64,000 nt of DNA from Setoptus koraiensis. Its lineage: Eukaryota; Animalia; Arthropoda. Positions 35,660 through 44,632 of the stretch are shown piece after piece. The stretch is from assembly GCA_048013815.1 (NCBI GenBank), contig CM106585.1:7564001-7628000 (forward strand), in the 5' to 3' direction. A program made the translations under genes and the position numbers. The notes beneath the pieces are model-generated. The model was not told the DNA's origin and made no database searches. It saw only the letters and a program-made list of their open reading frames with translations. Each line of letters begins with the position of its first letter. Position 1 is the first letter of the stretch.

Positions 35660-37323
35660 TTATTGTTTCACTATTGCCTCGCCAATGAAATCCATTACAG
35701 ATGGATCGCTTAGGATGGTCATATGATCAATATCATCAAAATTCTTGTAATAAATTGGGGCCTTTTGTTGATCTTTCCACTTATTGCAAGCTTGCAAACT
35801 AATCAGATTCACTGTGCCGTCACCATCAGAATAGGAAATTTTCGGCCTGCCATTGGGAAATTCATTTTTACCATACTCCAAATGCTCTATCGTGCTTATT
35901 TTGTGTCCATGCAAACAATGAACCTCAACGCCTGGCGCTTTTGTGGGTTGAGTGACATTGTGCACATCTTGCCACATTTTGTAGCCAATATCATAATTAA
36001 TATCGGCAAAGAATTGCTTGTAATCGTTGACAGTGTAACCTTTGCCATCGTTATGCATAAGTATCTTGTCGCTGGGCCAAACTGAACCAGATGGAAGCAA
36101 GTATGCTAAACTGGGAAAGGTTCTAACATCTTTTCTCAATGACAACGATGGTATCATTATAACACCAAAATTGTCACCTGAGGCAAACGCTTTCATTGCT
36201 TTCACCGAGCCGCCCCAAACACCTGACAACGATATTAGAGAGCGAACGTAGCGATCTTTCCATTGTTGTTCTTTGTTTTGCAAGAAATACAACGCATTCA
36301 AGCAACCCATAGAATGGCATATTAGTATAACGGGTTCGTTTGCGTTGTTCTTGTAGGTCTGCTCAATCAGCTCGTTGAATTGCCGGAAGAACTCTTTTAA
36401 TTCATTGGGTGCCTTGCGAAAATCGTATGGAGCGCCCACAACATTTTTGTTTCGTTCGTAGCCCAATGAGACAAGTCGCTCGACTAAAGCCTCAAAATAG
36501 CTTGTTCCGTACAGCTTGACTGGATCCATAAATTCAATAGATTCTGTGGTGCCGAATCCGACCACTCTGATGTCCACCCCTTCTGGGTTGTTTGTTGTTC
36601 TAGTGGTTTCATTGTAAATCAATCGCATACTAGCAATAGGAAGGGAAGAGATATTTGGATAACATGTTAAATACACTTGTAGACTGATGGCGATATTATT
36701 CTTTTGCTCGTTTGTCACACCCAATCCTCAACTTACTTATCGACCCAACAATCTAAGGCAAATGGCACCAAAAGAGACAAGTTCAGCCATAAATCAAACC
36801 AATCGGTCTTCTTGTCGCAATAGTGATGGAGAGCCGCTTTTTTGTTTAGTTTGGCCTCAAGACGACTGCCACCATCGCCAGGAATCAATATGATTGGACT
36901 CAAGTGCGACTTTGTTGTCGATATACCCTTTTCACTGCCAGAGTTCTTGATATTGTCCTCAGTGACTTTGTCGTTCTTCAAAATTGATTTCTCAGTTGTT
37001 GCACTGTGTTCGAGATAACTTTCCTTGATATCATTAGCTGTCAGACTGTTCTCTACAATCATTCTTGCATTGACATCGTCGCTGTTTGGTAAATCAACCA
37101 ATAATCTCGATATGGCCAACTTTGGGTCAGATTCTTGCGTCTCGCTGTAGAGACTCCCGAACCAGCTTCGCCAGCTCAATATCCCGGGTTTATTGTTGCT
37201 GTCGTTCGATGAAGGTCGATCATCATTGTATTTGTTTTGTGTTGTTGTGGATGCCAAACCACTTGCTACTATAATTGCCAAAATGGTCAATGGCAAACTG
37301 ACCATCATATAATGAAATCTCAT
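35660..37323 (-). CDS. PLA2G15: Lysosomal phospholipase A2 (PLA2G15)/LCAT family, 2 exons
   Basis: Signal peptide, PIILIPGDGGSRLEA, DCWVD|NMRL across a 107-bp intron (36736-36630), GAPYDFR, CHSMG nucleophile, DGDGTV and DHMTIL. Confidence 0.92.
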
Positions 37324-38217
37324 GAGAGGGTGTGTTTTTTTTAGGCGGTGCTATCTTTAAAACGACTATTCTCTCAGTATTCAAGTTATTCGGGAATCTC
37401 AAACTGACAAATAAACAACCATTATGGAGCCGAATAAATAACTCTCATCTAGTTATCATTATAAAAAAAACATATTCTCCCTGTCGCTTTCTGTCACTGA
37501 ATGGAAAAAAACTTTCAACCCCACCACTTCTAAATCATGCTATTTGTAACTCTCCTATATATGACGTGTAGGCATCATGAATATAATGCATGAAAATTAC
37601 AAATACGCAACGAGAATGAAGCTAGCAAACCAATAAATGTGATATCAATAGTGGAGATTTCGCAATGCTGCGATCAATGACTTAAAGTTGCTAAGTTGAC
37701 AAAATTATTTGTGCCTTGACACTGTGATCATTGATTCATCAATTAAATCCAGACAGATGAGGCATTTGTAGTCTACATGCTACAGCATGAAGCTGACAAA
37801 ATGCACAGGAAGATATTTTAAGGATAATTGATCCGCATGGATTATTACTCTCTGCCCAGAATAATCAAATAACTGAACATGTCAAGAAATAACATCAATT
37901 TGAAATGAATTTACCTGAGCAGTTATGGAGACGCCAGAAAACGACTTCGCGCTAGGACTATAAAGTAACATTTGTTCCATCAAACCACCAAATCGGTGCT
38001 AGCTCAGGGTAAGCTTGAGCATCGAATGATTTTGCAAGCTCGCCGAGCGCGATCAGGGCAGCGATGAAAATAAGTTAAATTAAATATATTAACTATAATG
38101 TTCATGATATATATACTACGAGAAATGTATGCCATGAATCATTTAGAAAAGATCAGTAATTGCTTGTGTATTGCTGATTAAAAGTGTCTTTAATAATTAT
38201 TTATATCACACCACCAG

Positions 38218-41200
38218 TTACTGCTCATGCAACATTTGCCTGAGCATGTAGTGCAAGATACCTCCATTTTTAAAATATTCGACCTCAACCTCAGTATCAA
38301 ATCGTACTTTCACTTGAAATTTTGTCAAAACACCGTTCTCAACATAGACAGTGGCCAATTGATTTGGCTCGACCTTGGACCCAATATCAATTGTGAACGT
38401 TTCTCTACCGGTCAATTGTAACGAGCTTGCATTTTCTCCCTCTAAATATTGCAACGGTAAGACACACATACCAATCAAGTTGCTTCTGTGTATTCTCTCA
38501 TAACTTTCGGCTATGACCGCCTTGACGCCAAGTCCGTAGGGTCCTTTAGCGGCCCAATCACGACTTGAACCACAACCGTATTCTTTGCCTGCTAACACTA
38601 TCAACGGGGTTCCTGTCTCCTTGTACTTCTCTGCCGCATCAAAAACATCCAATTCCTCGCCAGTTGGCAAATACAATGTTCTCGGCTTCTGGACCATTTC
38701 CAACAGTTTGTTGGCCAAGCGAATGTTGGCGAAGGTTCCGCGAATCATTATGTTGTCATTGCCACGATATGAGCCGTAAGAGTTGATATCTTTGCTCTTG
38801 ACACTGTAAATTGAGTAAATTAATAGAAGAAGCAGAAATTAGAATGAATTGAACTGAGCTATTGTTTTGAGTTGAGAAATAAGCACGAAAGTAGCGATGA
38901 CTTACCCTTTGTTGGTCAGAAATCTATAGGCGGGACTGGTTCGACTTATGGCACCGGCAGGGCTGATCATATCAGTGGACACGGAATCGCCCAAATTCAA
39001 GAGAACGCGCGCACTGTTTATTTTATAATCGCGTGCGTTCAATTCTTTGGTCATTCCATGGAAAAAGAATGGGGCCTTAATATAGGTAGAATTCTCATCC
39101 CATGGATAGTGCAAGCTTTGTGGAGCATCCAATTCAGACCAATTCTTGCTACCCTTCTCAATGTTGTTGTAGACCTCTTTGAACATAGATTCGAGCACAT
39201 GACTCGACTCTACTTGCTCGATTTCCTCTTTGCTTGGCCAAATATCCCTAAGATAGACATCTGCGCCTGTAGACGATACACCCAAGGGTTCTCTCTCAAA
39301 GTCGATAATACGGCCAGCCAAAGCGCAAGCTACGACTATCAATGGCGAGGCTAAATAGTTTGCCCTAGTGTGCGGGTGTACACGTCCCTCAAAATTTCTA
39401 TTACCAGACAATACTCCGACTGTCACGAGTTCGCCCTGTTCAATGGCCTCTACGACTGCCGGCTCTAAGGGTCCTGAGTTGCCTATGCAAGATTGACAAC
39501 CGTATCCCACAACATAAAAGCCCAACTTCTCCAAATAGGGCAACATACCCGAATCTCTCAGATAATAAGTAACAACACCACTACCAGGCGACAAGCTTGT
39601 CTTTATGTAAGGCTTAACGGACAGACCCTTCTCAACGGCCTTCTTGGCTAACAAACCGGCACCCAACATAACAGACGGGTTAGAGGTGTTGGTGCAGCTT
39701 GTGATAGCGGCAATCACTATGGAGCCATGCTGCAATTCATGAGATTGTCCATCTAGTTCAAACTTAACGGGGCGTTGAGAGAGTTTTTGAGGTGACAAAC
39801 CAAATCCTTTAAATCCAGTGGGAGCCTTCAAGCACTCCTCGAAGTCCGATTTCATTTCACAAAACGGCACTCTATCATGGGGCCTCTTTGGTCCACTGAC
39901 CGATGGTGTCACTGTGCTCAAGTCCAGCTCGTAGGTCTGTGAGAACTCTGGATCTTCGTTGACGTCGTCGTAGTCGACACGATACATCTTCACTGCTTTT
40001 AAATATTGTTCCACATATTTGACCATGCTGCCACGTCCGGTTTGTTTCATGTAGGCGATGGTTTTGTCGTCAACAGGAAAGAAGCCAACTGTTGCTCCAT
40101 ACTCTGGACACATATTGGCAATAGTTGCCCTGTCAGCTAGAGACAATTGCTTGACACCAGGCCCATAGAATTCTACGAACTTTCCAACTACTCCCACTGA
40201 TCGTAGATGTTTGGTAATGGTAAGCACTAGATCAGTTGATGTGGAAAATTTGTCCAACTGACCCACTAATCTGTAGCCCACAACTTGTGGAATGGACATG
40301 GATACAATCTGGCCCAGCATGACCGCCTCGCATTCAATTCCACCACAACCGTAACCTGGGAATATCATGAATGAATTAGCGTTGTTTAGTCTCGGATATA
40401 GAAATGAATTCTTAAGTATTATAAGTATCAACAATTTCTCTTACCTACTACTCCCAATCCGTTGATCATGGTAGTGTGAGAGTCAGCGCCGACAAGAGAG
40501 TCCGGAAATAGAACGTTCTCTTTATTCTTGTAGACAACATGAGCTAGATACTCTAAATTGACCTGATGTACAATGCCTGATCCTGGTGGAATGATACGTA
40601 AATTATCCATACTTTTGGCTGCCCATTTCAAAAGTCGGAATCGTTCCTTGTTCCTTTCGAATTCCAAGTCCTGATTTTGTTGCAATGACTCGGCTCTAAA
40701 TTGGAGACAAGTAAACAACAAGATGTCAGAACAAGATGGAACAAATTAGTTAACAACTATACTCAGAAAACAATATTTGCACTTTGGCAATCAGAAAAGA
40801 AAGTTTGGTTGCATGGGTGTGAAGGAAAGGGGATAAAGGCTCGAACCCCTGAGATAATTCTTGATGAAATGGGCATGTTTTGTGTCTGAGTTTGAGCTTC
40901 TCGATGAGAGCGTGATAATCGTGGACCGTTGTGGACTTTTTCGACGCACCATTTACGGTCGGTGAGATGGCGCTAAAATCTGTCGATCTGACGTCCAGTT
41001 GGATGGCACCATTTCTCGCTCGTTTAATATCAATGTTACTGGCTTGATGGTGTCCATGCACACTGAGATCATAATTGTTTGTGAGACCTCTAGCTAATAG
41101 GCAATACTTGAATTTATCGCAATCCCCACACAGTGCCCTGTTGCCGACTGCCATTTGTTTAATTGAGCCATTTTCAGTATGGTACACACCACTAGAACTT

Positions 41201-42340
41201 CTAGAATTGTTTACTGTTGCTCCTGAGAGAAATTTTTGAGATCTTCCCGTGATTTGTTGACTACCTGAGTAACTTGGCGGTACATAAGTGTTTCTTACGG
41301 GTTGGGGCTGCACCTGCTGAGGCGGCATCTGAGTCAATCTATGGAGTCTACCTTAATTTATTATCCATGTGTTGTTATTGGATTAAAAGTGTTTTTGTTT
41401 GTTTGTTTGTACGGAAGGAGTGTAAGTTAAGACTTATGAACTACACAAATGGACAGGGCATAATATAAATGGTGAGCACATTAACTATTGTTGATTAGTG
41501 TTATCATCATTGCAAAACATGCCTGTGGTTAAGCCTCAATCTAGCCGCTATGACAAACATTGATGAGGTTTTAGAGGTGTGTTGTTGTTGCTGATGTATA
41601 ATCGTTGCATAGACGTAAACTTGGACGTAACTTGTGTGATCTACACTAACGGTTTCAGATTGACTGACGTTCTTATTGTCGCGTTGTCTCAATTACTAGG
41701 TGTTACCGGACAAAAGCTAGCTCGACTTATTAGGATATCAGGACGTACAGTTAGTGGGGAACAAATATTGCAAGTACTTGTTAAAGACAAACAGATACTC
41801 ACGTTTTGGCGTAATCGACCTGAACTGAGTGGTCGACAACTAGATCAACTTGACACAATGGATTAATTTTCTTTGGGTCACCACCTAGGAGGGCAAAGGC
41901 GTCACGCATGCCGGCGAAATCAACAACTGCCGGAACTCCGGTGAAATCCTGAAGAATGACTCTAGCTGGCTTGAATGGGACATCGTTGTCGTTTGCGTAC
42001 TGGCTCTGTTTCCAATTGAGCAATTTTTCAATGTCGCTCGGCTTGATAGAGAAATTGTCACAATTTCTCACGTTGGATTCGAGCAAAACACGAACAGATA
42101 TGGGCAATCGATCTGAGGGCAATTAGTAATAAAGGTGTGAGGATGTCATGTAAAACAATCATTTATTGTTATGTAGTTGTTATTATCTAATATTCATAAG
42201 GATCATTGAAGAGATTGACTGTTTAGCTTACAGTAGCGAGGATCGTTGAGCTTGTTTAGATTGTAATACTGATATGTCACGCCGTCGACCTCAAGGGATT
42301 CCTTGAGCCGGTCAAATTCGTTCACATATTTAGTGGCCAT
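38218..42340 (-). CDS. ACO1: Cytosolic aconitase / iron regulatory protein, 5 core exons plus a candidate cassette exon
   Basis: Exons are 42340-42232, 42112-41803, 40695-40445, 40355-38906 and 38803-38218, all GT-AG and in frame. Motifs include QDFTGVP, DHSVQVD, DSHTTM, Fe-S ligands TSCTNTS and [16 protein letters not shown] and [10 protein letters not shown]. Confidence 0.96.
40847..41338 (-). CDS. Candidate 492-nt in-frame cassette exon inside aconitase intron 2, resembling the IRP2 insertion (ends [10 protein letters not shown])
   Basis: Phase-2 acceptors at 41338 or 41347 and a phase-2 donor GG|GTTCGA at 40847/40846 match the phase-2 flanking exons. The frame is open throughout and includes a CGDC..C cluster and CPFH. 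Confidence 0.7.
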
Positions 42341-43099
42341 GATCTAGTTGAGACAGTCACTTAGGAGCGAATGATTAAAAATTGATGATTGTATAAAAGA
42401 CGATGCTTTATTGAGGCCACTGAATGTTTCTCTCTTAGTTTATCTATCAACCTTTTCTTACTATCGCGATCAGAATAAGTACGATGGCGTTGGCGATGGC
42501 TTGCTTGACCAATTGAAGGTGTGATAATGTACAATTTTGGAGTGGTTACATAATCATATATACCATTGGTGGCATGGCAATAGTTGTGGCGATAGCTGAC
42601 ACAACAAACAAGCTACAGTGGACAGATAGCGAGACTGAAGAAAAAGAATCAACATCGCCAGGTGGATAACGATGATGACGATAACGATGATCCAGAAAAG
42701 TGTAAGAGATACATACTGATGTTGGCGCACAATTTAAATGGCAAAATCAGTTACGTAACTGCTTGTGTCATGCAACTGCACATGTATAACAGTGTTGGAT
42801 CGTATTCCTTCAATTGGACTGAAACGTTCAGTCGCATACAGGATGGTGAATGTCACCACCGCCGATCATTAACTCACAACTTGTTGTATCAAAAACAAAT
42901 CAAGTTGTTAATTCAAATCATCTAGTAAAGCGACCTCTAACAAATGTCGTTGTTGTCACTTTGCTTAAGCTAGATCTAGCTTAAAAAGGAAAAGTTTATT
43001 TATCGATCCAACAGTTTCTATACTTATCACATTGCGATACATTATCATAATGGTGACGCTAACAAAACATCATAAACGTTCATCATATCGTTCAATCTA

Positions 43100-44632
43100 T
43101 TAGTCTAGTGCCGCGATAGCTGGTCCGAATGTTCTGTGTAGAGTATGACTGAAAAATGGCTTGCTCTGATTTCGCTCTATTGCTTCAAGTAATGGATCTT
43201 TTAGCATTTGTTCGGTGATAACAATTTTGACATTCGTTTTATCAGTGGTACCATCCTTACCATCCTTACCATCCTTACCATCCTTACCATCCTTACTATC
43301 CTTGTTAGGTGCTTGGCCAGCATTCATATCAGGTAGTATGCGTCCGAAATCCATTGATCGCAAAACTTGTTCGCTCTTTATCAGTGTTTCCAGAGAGCAA
43401 CGTTTCTCCGGCACGGTTAATATGTCATAAAGCTCTTTCATTTTACTAACACTTCTCCGCTTGTCCTTCAAATTTGGATCATTTTCAAACTTTTCCAATG
43501 TTCGCTTTAACGGGCTTATATACTTGCAAAGCTGCTTTAATTTTTCAGTATAGACATCATTTTCAAGATTCTGTGATTGAGGGGAATTCGTGTGTATCAT
43601 CTGAGGAGTATCTAACGGTACACTTGGCGATGGCACAGAATTGATAGAACTTGGTGCATGAGATCTAGGTTGCTGTGACAGTAGCGACGGATCCCCAGGT
43701 GATGGAACCATCATCGGCGACGGAACCATCATGGGCGATGGAACCATCATAGGTGATGGGACCATCATTGGCGATGGAACTGCCACTGGTGGCGCTGGGG
43801 ACAACGTTGGTTGAACTATCTGATTGACAACGGCAGCGTTTTTGGCCACTCTCTTATTGGTGCCGGGCTGCTTGGTGGCTCGGGTTGGCTGAGGCATCGT
43901 TTGATGGGGCATCATTTGGTTAGTTATTACTTGATGGGGTATCTGTTGTTGTTGCTGTTGTTGGTGCATCTGCTGCCGCACGCCCCTTGGCATGCTCTGC
44001 AATTGCTGCTGAGACATCATTATATTGTGCATCTGTTGAGTTTGTCCCGCAATCTGTTGGCTTGGTTGTACTTGAATTATGGGACGATGTTGTTGCTGTT
44101 GTTGGATTCTAGGCTGTTGCATCACCATTTGTTGTTGCATTTGCAGTTGACCTCGTTGCTGATTGATCTGCATAGGTGCCATTCCATGTTGAATACGAGT
44201 CTGGGGTATTTGCATAGGTTGTGAATGCTGTTGCATCATAATATGAGGCTGACCATGGCCCCCATGAACCATTCTGGTTTGTTGTTGTTGTAATTGCTGC
44301 TGCTGCTGCTGTTGTTGTTGCTGCTGATATTGCTGTTGCATGGCCATTTGCTGAGGTCCTTGAAGTTGAATATGTTGATGTTGGGGTGCCATATGTTGTT
44401 GTTGTTGTTGCTGTTGTTGAATTTGTTGAGGAGTCATGGCTTGCATCACCTGCTGTTGGGCAGCTCTATTGCGGCGTGCTTGACCTCTGACAGTAGCCAT
44501 TTGTTGTTGAGGTTGTGGCTGAAACTGAACTTGTTGGGGCTGAGGTTGTTGTTGTTGTTGCTGTTGAAGCTGGTCGGTAACAATATGAGTGGTGTAAAAT
44601 TGCTCCTGGCCAAAAGGTAATCTCTGCGCCAT
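43100..44632 (-). CDS. MED15: Mediator subunit 15-like protein (Q-rich region and middle domain)
   Basis: Long Q/M/P-rich region, PSP repeats, YTEKLKQLCKYISPLKR, KMKELYDILT..KRCSLETL and PLLEAI...FSHTLHRTFGPAI, all as in the MED15 middle region. Confidence 0.85.
   Translation of the reverse strand: MAQRLPFGQEQFYTTHIVTDQLQQQQQQQPQPQQVQFQPQPQQQMATVRGQARRNRAAQQQVMQAMTPQQIQQQQQQQQHMAPQHQHIQLQGPQQMAMQQQYQQQQQQQQQQQLQQQQTRMVHGGHGQPHIMMQQHSQPMQIPQTRIQHGMAPMQINQQRGQLQMQQQMVMQQPRIQQQQQHRPIIQVQPSQQIAGQTQQMHNIMMSQQQLQSMPRGVRQQMHQQQQQQQIPHQVITNQMMPHQTMPQPTRATKQPGTNKRVAKNAAVVNQIVQPTLSPAPPVAVPSPMMVPSPMMVPSPMMVPSPMMVPSPGDPSLLSQQPRSHAPSSINSVPSPSVPLDTPQMIHTNSPQSQNLENDVYTEKLKQLCKYISPLKRTLEKFENDPNLKDKRRSVSKMKELYDILTVPEKRCSLETLIKSEQVLRSMDFGRILPDMNAGQAPNKDSKDGKDGKDGKDGKDGTTDKTNVKIVITEQMLKDPLLEAIERNQSKPFFSHTLHRTFGPAIAALD
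43250..43294 (-). repeat. 9-bp coding tandem repeat in MED15 (DGK repeats)
   Basis: ACCATCCTT x4 plus one variant on the + strand. Confidence 0.9.
43698..43787 (-). repeat. 18-bp coding tandem repeat in MED15 (MMVPSP x4 plus a variant)
   Basis: The translation reads VAVPSP MMVPSP MMVPSP MMVPSP MMVPSP. Confidence 0.9.

Follow-up and report, generated by a model that had tools for sequence, protein, structure and literature searches.

A conserved cassette exon in the IRP1-type gene of acariform mites and its probable kinship with the insert of IRP2

Introduction

Iron regulatory protein 2 (IRP2), a main cellular iron regulator of mammals, is defined by a 73-amino acid (aa) insert. This insert was proposed to sense iron or heme but iron-dependent degradation was later found not to require it (PMC2267205, PMC3048577). 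It has an exon to itself and is unstructured (PMC3048577). The proposed iron/heme ligands of IRP2 are four cysteines, C168, C174, C178 and C201 (PMC2267205). The IRP2 peptide TPILCPFHL binds heme with a sub-micromolar dissociation constant, the placement of the His relative to the Cys-Pro alters the coordination, and the cysteine of the Cys-Pro pair closes a helix (PMC10377097). IRP2 has been treated as a vertebrate protein, with invertebrates regarded as having IRP1 homologues only (PMC6884552, PMC8947174, PMC4184891). Here we describe a cassette exon in the aconitase/IRP gene of the mite Setoptus koraiensis, which encodes a Cys-rich insert ending close to a Cys-Pro-Phe-His (CPFH) motif, and we compare it with the insert of IRP2. 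The exon lies in a stretch of 64,000 nucleotides (nt) from contig CM106585.1 of assembly GCA_048013815.1 (positions 7,564,001 to 7,628,000, forward strand), referred to as the window; all coordinates are those of the window unless another locus is named.

Results

Intron 2 of the mite aconitase/IRP gene contains a coding exon

The host gene consists of five exons on the minus strand, from 42340 to 38218, and its product contains the Pfam domains Aconitase and Aconitase_C (Table 1). The protein is 65-69% identical to ACO1 of tick, insect and fish, and its core retains the Fe-S ligand motifs of the IRP1 type (SCTNTSNP and a second motif). Judged from its sequence, the host gene is an ordinary IRP1-type cytosolic aconitase. 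Intron 2 (41802-40696) measures 1107 nt, compared to 119, 89 and 102 nt for introns 1, 3 and 4. It is bounded by GCC AAA AC/GTGAGT at the end of exon 2 (41803) and by TTTAG/A GCC GAG at the start of exon 3 (40695), where the slash marks the exon boundary. The longest stop-free stretch in this intron runs for 200 codons. When the intron was shuffled 5000 times, the longest stretch averaged 83 codons and reached at most 196, so that 0 of 5000 shuffles attained the observed length.

Two AG dinucleotides, at 41349-41348 and 41340-41339, stand in phase before the open frame, and one base following them completes the split codon of exon 2. At the other end the donor is GG/GTTCGA, with its GT at 40846-40845, and two bases are passed on to exon 3. 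Inclusion gives the junction DYAKT/LHRL upstream and leads from ELSQG into exon 3 downstream, in phase 2 on both sides. The exon is 501 nt long, a multiple of three, both of its splice sites are present, and the inserted residues sit in domain 1 between DYAK and AESLQ. The spliced models without and with the exon, of 901 and 1068 aa, are both free of stops. An earlier note on this DNA had pointed to the long intron 2, its open frame, the phase-2 splice sites and the weak donor, and all of these were confirmed in the sequence at their coordinates, as was its claim that inclusion and skipping both keep the frame. The same note had put the insert at 163 aa. The AG at 41340-41339 is real, but homology with the loci of other species identifies the AG at 41349-41348 as the ancestral acceptor, which places the exon at 41347-40847 and gives 167 added residues rather than 163. 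The second AG lies 9 nt downstream of the first, both are conserved in the relative described next, and use of the second drops three residues (LHR).

A collection of 5.8 billion proteins contained one close relative of the cassette open reading frame (ORF). This relative, locus L001, lies on a 10.7-kb contig in the same aconitase intron, and its large aconitase exon is 95% identical to that of the window. At the DNA level the two loci are 87-90% identical in the aconitase exons, ~67% in the intron parts and 79% in the cassette ORF, with 86-90% in the last 250 nt of the latter. Every length difference between them within the cassette ORF preserves the frame. The ratio of non-synonymous to synonymous substitution rates (dN/dS), calculated by the Nei-Gojobori method, was 0.295 for the cassette (bootstrap 0.18-0.46). 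The halves of the cassette gave 0.57 (first) and 0.10 (second, C-terminal) at dS 0.65, compared to 0.034 at dS 0.79 in the aconitase core. Similarity between the two proteins stops at ELSQG, and the tails obtained by reading through to the next stop codon are unrelated. Such an ending at the donor is expected of a splice site and would not be shown by an independent gene. Collectively, the frame, the boundaries and the substitution pattern indicate that 41347-40847 is a genuine coding exon of the aconitase/IRP gene and is under purifying selection.

The cassette is shared by both branches of acariform mites

Using phmmer against 1.84 billion representative sequences, we found nine further ORFs of 106-202 aa besides L001, together with two low-complexity matches. 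A profile search enlarged the family from the 11 homologues of the phmmer search to 26, and a scan of metagenomes contributed three loci. The family alignment comprised 30 cassette copies. Judged by the cassette family, by synteny and by its closest named aconitases, the window falls among acariform mites, in a long-branched clade whose members here come solely from metagenome and unlabelled assemblies. In every locus that was fetched (L002, L004-L012), the cassette ORF stands between an exon ending in DHSVQVD[FY]AK and an exon starting with A[DE]SLQKNQ, and the cassette has phase 2 on both sides in 11 loci besides the window. Two elements, L-C-x2-C-x5-C and K-x-R-x2-C-P-F-H, are invariant across the 30 copies, while the remainder varies in sequence and in length (inserts of ~95-175 aa). 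Around the second element, C-P-F is invariant, the residue before the Cys is T or N, and a K lies two residues before the Cys. The earlier note had made its exon depend on conservation of CPFH in related species; the motif is present in 30 of 30 copies, which lie in the same intron wherever their DNA was fetched, including those of the two named mites that follow.

In Sarcoptes scabiei (GCA_014595675.1, WVUK01000046.1, L013 2475-6335) the aconitase gene carries the cassette. The annotation of this species splits the aconitase into three genes and calls part of the cassette a 102-aa hypothetical protein; its 736-aa model begins with out-of-frame residues. In the velvet mite Dinothrombium tinctorium (GCA_003675995.1, L014 1501-6921) the annotated 866-aa protein omits the cassette. 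A well-formed copy is nevertheless present 111 nt into a 2.3-kb intron, with the acceptor ...CTGTATTACAG and the donor GTTAGA. Because the exon is found in Sarcoptes and Dinothrombium, both great branches of the acariform mites have it.

One lineage appears to have dispensed with the exon. A 15-kb Logan contig (P0007) contains a single 866-aa ORF that reads through ...VDFAKSAESLQKNQ, without the intron and without the insert, and with an intact core. In a single-gene tree, P0007 is nested inside the cassette-bearing clade. This suggests that the intron and the exon were lost together, via an intron-less copy.

Comparison of the cassette with Pfam returned no family, and comparison with the PDB by sequence gave chance-level matches only (KEOPS Pcc1 and a segment of a Piwi MID domain, E 0.008). 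Positions 23-72 of the family profile, an island around the Cys cluster (LC-x-DC-x5-C-x-AR-x-L), weakly resemble the Piwi MID segment of 4p1z_A, probably by chance.

Splice signals suggest optional use of the cassette

None of 12 cassette donors matched GTRAGT, whereas in these loci the upstream exon had a matching donor in 10 of 11 cases. The cassette donors took the forms GTTAGA, GTAGAG, GTTCGA, GTTGGA and GTACAT. The fraction of pyrimidines in the 20 bases before the acceptor was 0.56 for the cassette compared to 0.74 for the downstream constitutive acceptor (Mann-Whitney p = 4e-4). Since these weak splice sites are kept across the clade and the insert-less lineage P0007 is viable, we infer that the cassette is used optionally, with one gene giving rise to an IRP1-like isoform of 901 aa and an IRP2-like isoform of 1068 aa.

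The bases that follow the weak donor are kept as GT(T)AGAGAG across distant taxa (L002, L004, L006, L007, L009-L011). This conservation exceeds the needs of a donor and may mark a splicing control element. The upstream part of the intron has a block at 41501-41550, starting ~170 nt before the cassette, that shares 84% identity with L001 compared to ~65% around it. In the window and in L001 this block contains GCATG (41518-41522 in the window). As the core motif of Rbfox, GCATG was considered as a lead to a splicing regulator and was dropped, being present in only 5 of 11 loci, which is close to chance.

A second candidate for alternative use of this site came from another animal. P0108 and P0087 (JGI contigs of 2812 and 3840 nt) encode aconitase/IRPs that are 97% identical and are set apart by a single insert, a Cys-rich segment of 19 residues, MNVPMVCQCGGCVMQGRES. 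The segment sits at exactly the same site as the mite cassette and contains no CPFH. The pair has the appearance of an included and a skipped form of a further cassette, in an animal other than the mite.

Position and register relate the cassette to the insert of IRP2

Aligned with human IRP2 (6vcd_A), exon 3 of the window begins at E212, which pairs with the E of the mite AESLQ; in IRP1 the corresponding residue is 136. In 6vcd_A the first residue of LCPFH is number 200, and the distance from its Cys to the core Glu measures 11 residues in the mite as well as in Holothuria and human. This bears out the claim of the earlier note that the spacing from CPFH to the core equals that of IRP2. Among the annotated aconitases that were fetched, the sole carrier of CPFH was KAJ8036398.1 (P0067) of the sea cucumber Holothuria leucospilota. 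The cluster of P0067 also holds a full-length protein of 942 aa, P0150, on a 3.6-kb contig; because the Holothuria gene spans at least 24 kb, this contig can only be a spliced transcript.

The Holothuria insert has 48 residues, lies at the same site and aligns with the two ends of the human 73-aa domain, through C-x-x-x-NAPNPGGG at the first of them and through [VL]CPFH at the last. It forms a separate exon in an 11.6-kb intron, with AG/GTAAGA at the end of the upstream exon and TG/GTCAGT at the end of the insert exon. As in the mite, the exon consists of one base, codons and two bases, and it closes with CPFH, five codons and a split codon, so that the phases and the 3' layout are the same. 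A cluster of three Cys lies upstream of CPFH in mite, Holothuria and human, spaced C-x2-C-x5-C, C-x2-C-x3-C and C168/C174/C178, respectively. By matching the human domain at its start as well as its end, the echinoderm exon shows that an IRP2-type insert exists outside vertebrates, and it upholds the view of the earlier note that the insert predates them.

The modelled cassette is largely disordered

An AlphaFold2 model of the cassette, built from the 30-sequence alignment, had a low mean predicted local distance difference test (pLDDT) score of 53 and was mostly disordered. Helices were confined to two short islands at the conserved motifs, residues 74-93, covering the Cys cluster, and 142-165, and Cys158 was placed at the end of the first late helix. 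The model matches the literature on the IRP2 insert, in being unstructured and in having the Cys of the Cys-Pro pair at a helix end.

Features of the locus and neighbouring genes

The coordinates of the gene are collected in Table 1. Just downstream of the aconitase lies a gene of the LCAT family (35660-37323, minus strand), which is also found in L001, L006, L010 and L011. A DnaJ gene lies upstream of the aconitase in several loci, and the DnaJ/LCAT synteny is kept across the clade. The window also contains a 510-aa ORF at 43100-44632 (minus strand) with an extreme abundance of Gln runs, in which a PSPMMV segment recurs and a GKD repeat is present.

Table 1. Parts of the aconitase/IRP gene and of its cassette exon, by position in the window
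Feature	Position	Strand	Basis
Exon 1, start codon ATG (42340), donor T/GTAAGC	42232..42340	-	Sequence read; spliced model open
Exon 2, final codon split (AC, phase 2), donor GTGAGT	41803..42112	-	Sequence read; Pfam Aconitase match
Intron part A, 455 nt, weak pyrimidine-poor acceptor ...AAGGTAG	41348..41802	-	Comparison with relative and acceptor comparison
Cassette exon, 501 nt = 1 nt + 166 codons + 2 nt	40847..41347	-	Open frame, phases, selection, ~30 homologues
Invariant Cys cluster C-x2-C-x5-C	41101..41130	-	30/30 family members
Invariant Cys-Pro-Phe-His; 5 codons + split codon before the cassette 3' end	40864..40875	-	30/30 members; register as in Holothuria and human IRP2
Intron part B, 151 nt, weak donor GTTCGA, strong acceptor	40696..40846	-	Coding similarity to relative ends exactly here; donor comparison
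Exon 3, begins A/GCC GAG TCA	40445..40695	-	Sequence read, spliced model, alignment to IRP2/IRP1
Exon 4, aconitase core, Fe-S ligand motifs including SCTNTSNP	38906..40355	-	Domain search and spliced model
Exon 5, aconitase C-terminal domain, stop 38220-38218	38218..38803	-	Domain search and spliced model

Discussion

The explanation that we consider likely overall is that intron 2 of a single IRP1-type gene harbours a coding cassette exon, that this exon descends from the same source as the IRP2 insert, that it is used optionally and that it encodes a loop that may respond to heme or iron. With regard to descent, the mite exon is probably the same exon as the IRP2 insert, much diverged, although we hold this a little less firmly than the explanation as a whole. 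The case for this homology is made by position, not by sequence similarity. The earlier note had called the insert IRP2-like; its position, the intron phase, the Cys cluster (apart from its spacing) and the register of CPFH agree with that description, but significant sequence similarity was not obtained with the profile or with hhalign. A further step, which we put forward tentatively and think somewhat less likely to be right than wrong, is that the cassette survives from an exon that the last common ancestor of protostomes and deuterostomes already had. A single IRP gene would then have been spliced into an aconitase-type isoform and a sensor isoform with the Cys cluster and CPFH, and the IRP1 and IRP2 of vertebrates would be the two splice forms, frozen as separate genes after duplication.

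Several results weigh against this explanation. The mite family profile did not match 6vcd_A in the PDB at E <= 10. When the profile was compared with the Holothuria insert by hhalign, CPFH was in register, with P = 0.005 and a probability of 7%, which is not significant. NAPNPGGG, common to human and sea cucumber, was absent from the 30 mite copies, which have L-M-K-I-T-R-E-Q at the N-terminus instead, and the spacing of the Cys cluster is unlike between mite, Holothuria and human. With regard to splicing, the family members in the protein collections included no spliced form; all are genomic ORFs, and none runs from SLG to ADSLQKNQ. Four poly-A or oligo-dT RNA sequencing runs gave zero reads over 38000-43000, but their label evidently belongs to another organism and the runs are therefore no test. 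A sensor role for the insert is unproven even in mammals, where iron-dependent degradation in cultured cells proceeds without the 73-aa domain (PMC2267205, PMC3048577). As to the label of the RNA runs, a DNA run that shares this species label contains 94% of the sequence words of the locus, and the label probably denotes a host or a mixed sample.

The strongest competitor holds that the mite exon is real and convergent, having arisen by independent exonisation in the same ancient intron, at a permissive surface loop. The absence of significant similarity beyond CPFH would fit this, as would the different N-terminal motifs (LMKITREQ in mites and NAPNPGGG in deuterostomes) and the differing Cys spacing. 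The Cys-rich 19-aa insert of P0108/P0087 is a third insert at this site and has no CPFH, so the intron may be a hotspot, and no insert is seen in the IRPs annotated for insects, ticks, spiders and cnidarians. These annotations weigh little, because annotations demonstrably miss the exon. That chance should have brought together CPFH, five codons, a split codon, the same phase and the same intron is very improbable (roughly 1e-6 for the motif at a single fixed position), and the order of three-Cys cluster, spacer and CPFH is alike in all three lineages. We consider convergence unlikely, though deserving of serious attention. Less probable again is that the exon is constitutive, so that the mite IRP always has the insert and gene predictors simply miss it. 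The annotation of Holothuria and the transcript-like P0150 both include their exon, and strong purifying selection on the C-terminal half of the cassette fits a permanently used segment. Against this, the cassette donors are non-consensus in 12 of 12 cases and the acceptors poor in pyrimidines, whereas the flanking sites are strong, and this pattern is kept clade-wide. The intact core of P0007, which has neither intron nor insert, implies that an insert-less protein is viable, and P0108 is set apart from P0087 only by its Cys-rich insert in this place.

Two further possibilities, an alternative first exon and a nested gene, were set aside on the evidence of boundary conservation, phase and selection. 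Were the cassette an alternative first exon with an intronic promoter, the ATG at 41328 would be the site of initiation and the product an aconitase minus its first ~140 residues. Most family ORFs begin with M-[KR]-I-[TI]-R, the window and L001 carry an ATG five codons further in, and an in-frame stop (TAA, 41355-41353) lies just upstream. Yet the Met is present in only 4 of 10 loci, its place being taken by His (window, L001), Phe (L009), Leu (L010), Asn (L011) or Ser (L012), whereas the preceding Leu codon is conserved through synonymous changes (CTC, CTT, TTG, TTA, CTA). An AG stands at the identical place in 10 of 10 loci, followed by one nt and the Leu codon, and several loci have a branch-point-like ACTGAC or CTGAC upstream of it. 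In Sarcoptes and Dinothrombium the acceptors have a good polypyrimidine tract and the right phase. The product would also be without the catalytic DHS region of exon 2, and we regard this origin as very improbable. An independent nested gene, or the degenerating ORF of a mobile element, is harder still to credit. The annotators of Sarcoptes did call a separate 102-aa gene, and the cassette has no Pfam family; but it is a GT and not a stop codon that ends the conservation, and the tails of different species bear no relation to each other. The same strand, intron and phase as the host gene are kept in ~30 taxa, there are no repeats or transposase features, and dN/dS is 0.1-0.3. The nested independent transcript that the earlier note had named as a possible alternative is not supported by these data, as similarity stops at the donor GT and the phase of the host is always kept.

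If the optional, IRP2-related exon is accepted, the included isoform would be an IRP1-type protein with a flexible loop. We propose that this loop could bind heme, or a metal via its four Cys and a His, in a transient manner. Binding might alter the stability of the included isoform, its binding of partners, or its switch between aconitase and RNA-binding states.

On the reading of the exon as related to IRP2, the defining feature of IRP2 would be hundreds of millions of years older than vertebrates. A literature search, with incomplete coverage, turned up neither an IRP2-type insert from an invertebrate nor splicing of IRP in a mite. The comparison among mites singles out the residues that matter (the three Cys, K-x-R and CPFH), and single-gene systems offer a direct comparison between included and skipped forms. 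Current mite annotations split or truncate the aconitase/IRP gene, and similar hidden exons may exist in the same intron of other invertebrates. If the exon is indeed ancestral, the fixed register of CPFH would imply an essential role in iron or heme sensing.

Compared to the described systems, the mite cassette is closest in placement to the 73-aa domain of human IRP2 (IREB2, 6vcd_A). Both are inserted in domain 1, after DHSxQxDxxK and before xExLxxNQxxEF, and both are Cys-rich, largely unstructured and encoded by an exon of their own (PMC3048577 for the human exon). In both, CPFH lies near the C-terminal end of the insert (C201-H204 in human), with its Cys 11 residues before the core Glu. 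They differ in size, with 167 aa in the mite compared to 73 aa, and the mite insert has neither significant similarity nor NAPNPGGG. IRP2 is a dedicated, non-enzymatic paralogue that is degraded through FBXL5, whereas the mite host keeps the Fe-S motifs of the IRP1 type and is the only copy seen; the splice sites of the mite cassette are weak, suggesting optional use. The Holothuria protein KAJ8036398.1 resembles that of the mite in that its insert has an exon of its own in this intron, with identical phases on both sides, and in the CPFH layout, the three Cys upstream and the IRP1-like core. In contrast to the mite insert, that of Holothuria has only 48 aa, aligns clearly to both ends of the human domain, and is present in an annotation and in a transcript-like contig.

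With the IRP1/ACO1 proteins of other invertebrates, the mite host shares two Pfam aconitase domains and the Fe-S ligand motifs; the papers on these proteins (PMC8947174, PMC4184891, PMC6884552) make no mention of an insert at this place. With the heme regulatory (Cys-Pro) motifs of ALAS1, HRI, Bach1, PER2 and IRP2, the mite motif shares an invariant Cys-Pro, the hydrophobic residue after it and a His close by (PMC10377097, PMC3904948). In the model it lies at a helix end within a flexible segment, and its ancestral context would be K-N-C-P-F-H, as in Sarcoptes and Dinothrombium. Unlike these motifs, it stands beside three more invariant Cys, which could form a Zn or Fe-S site, and it is best described as a putative heme motif.

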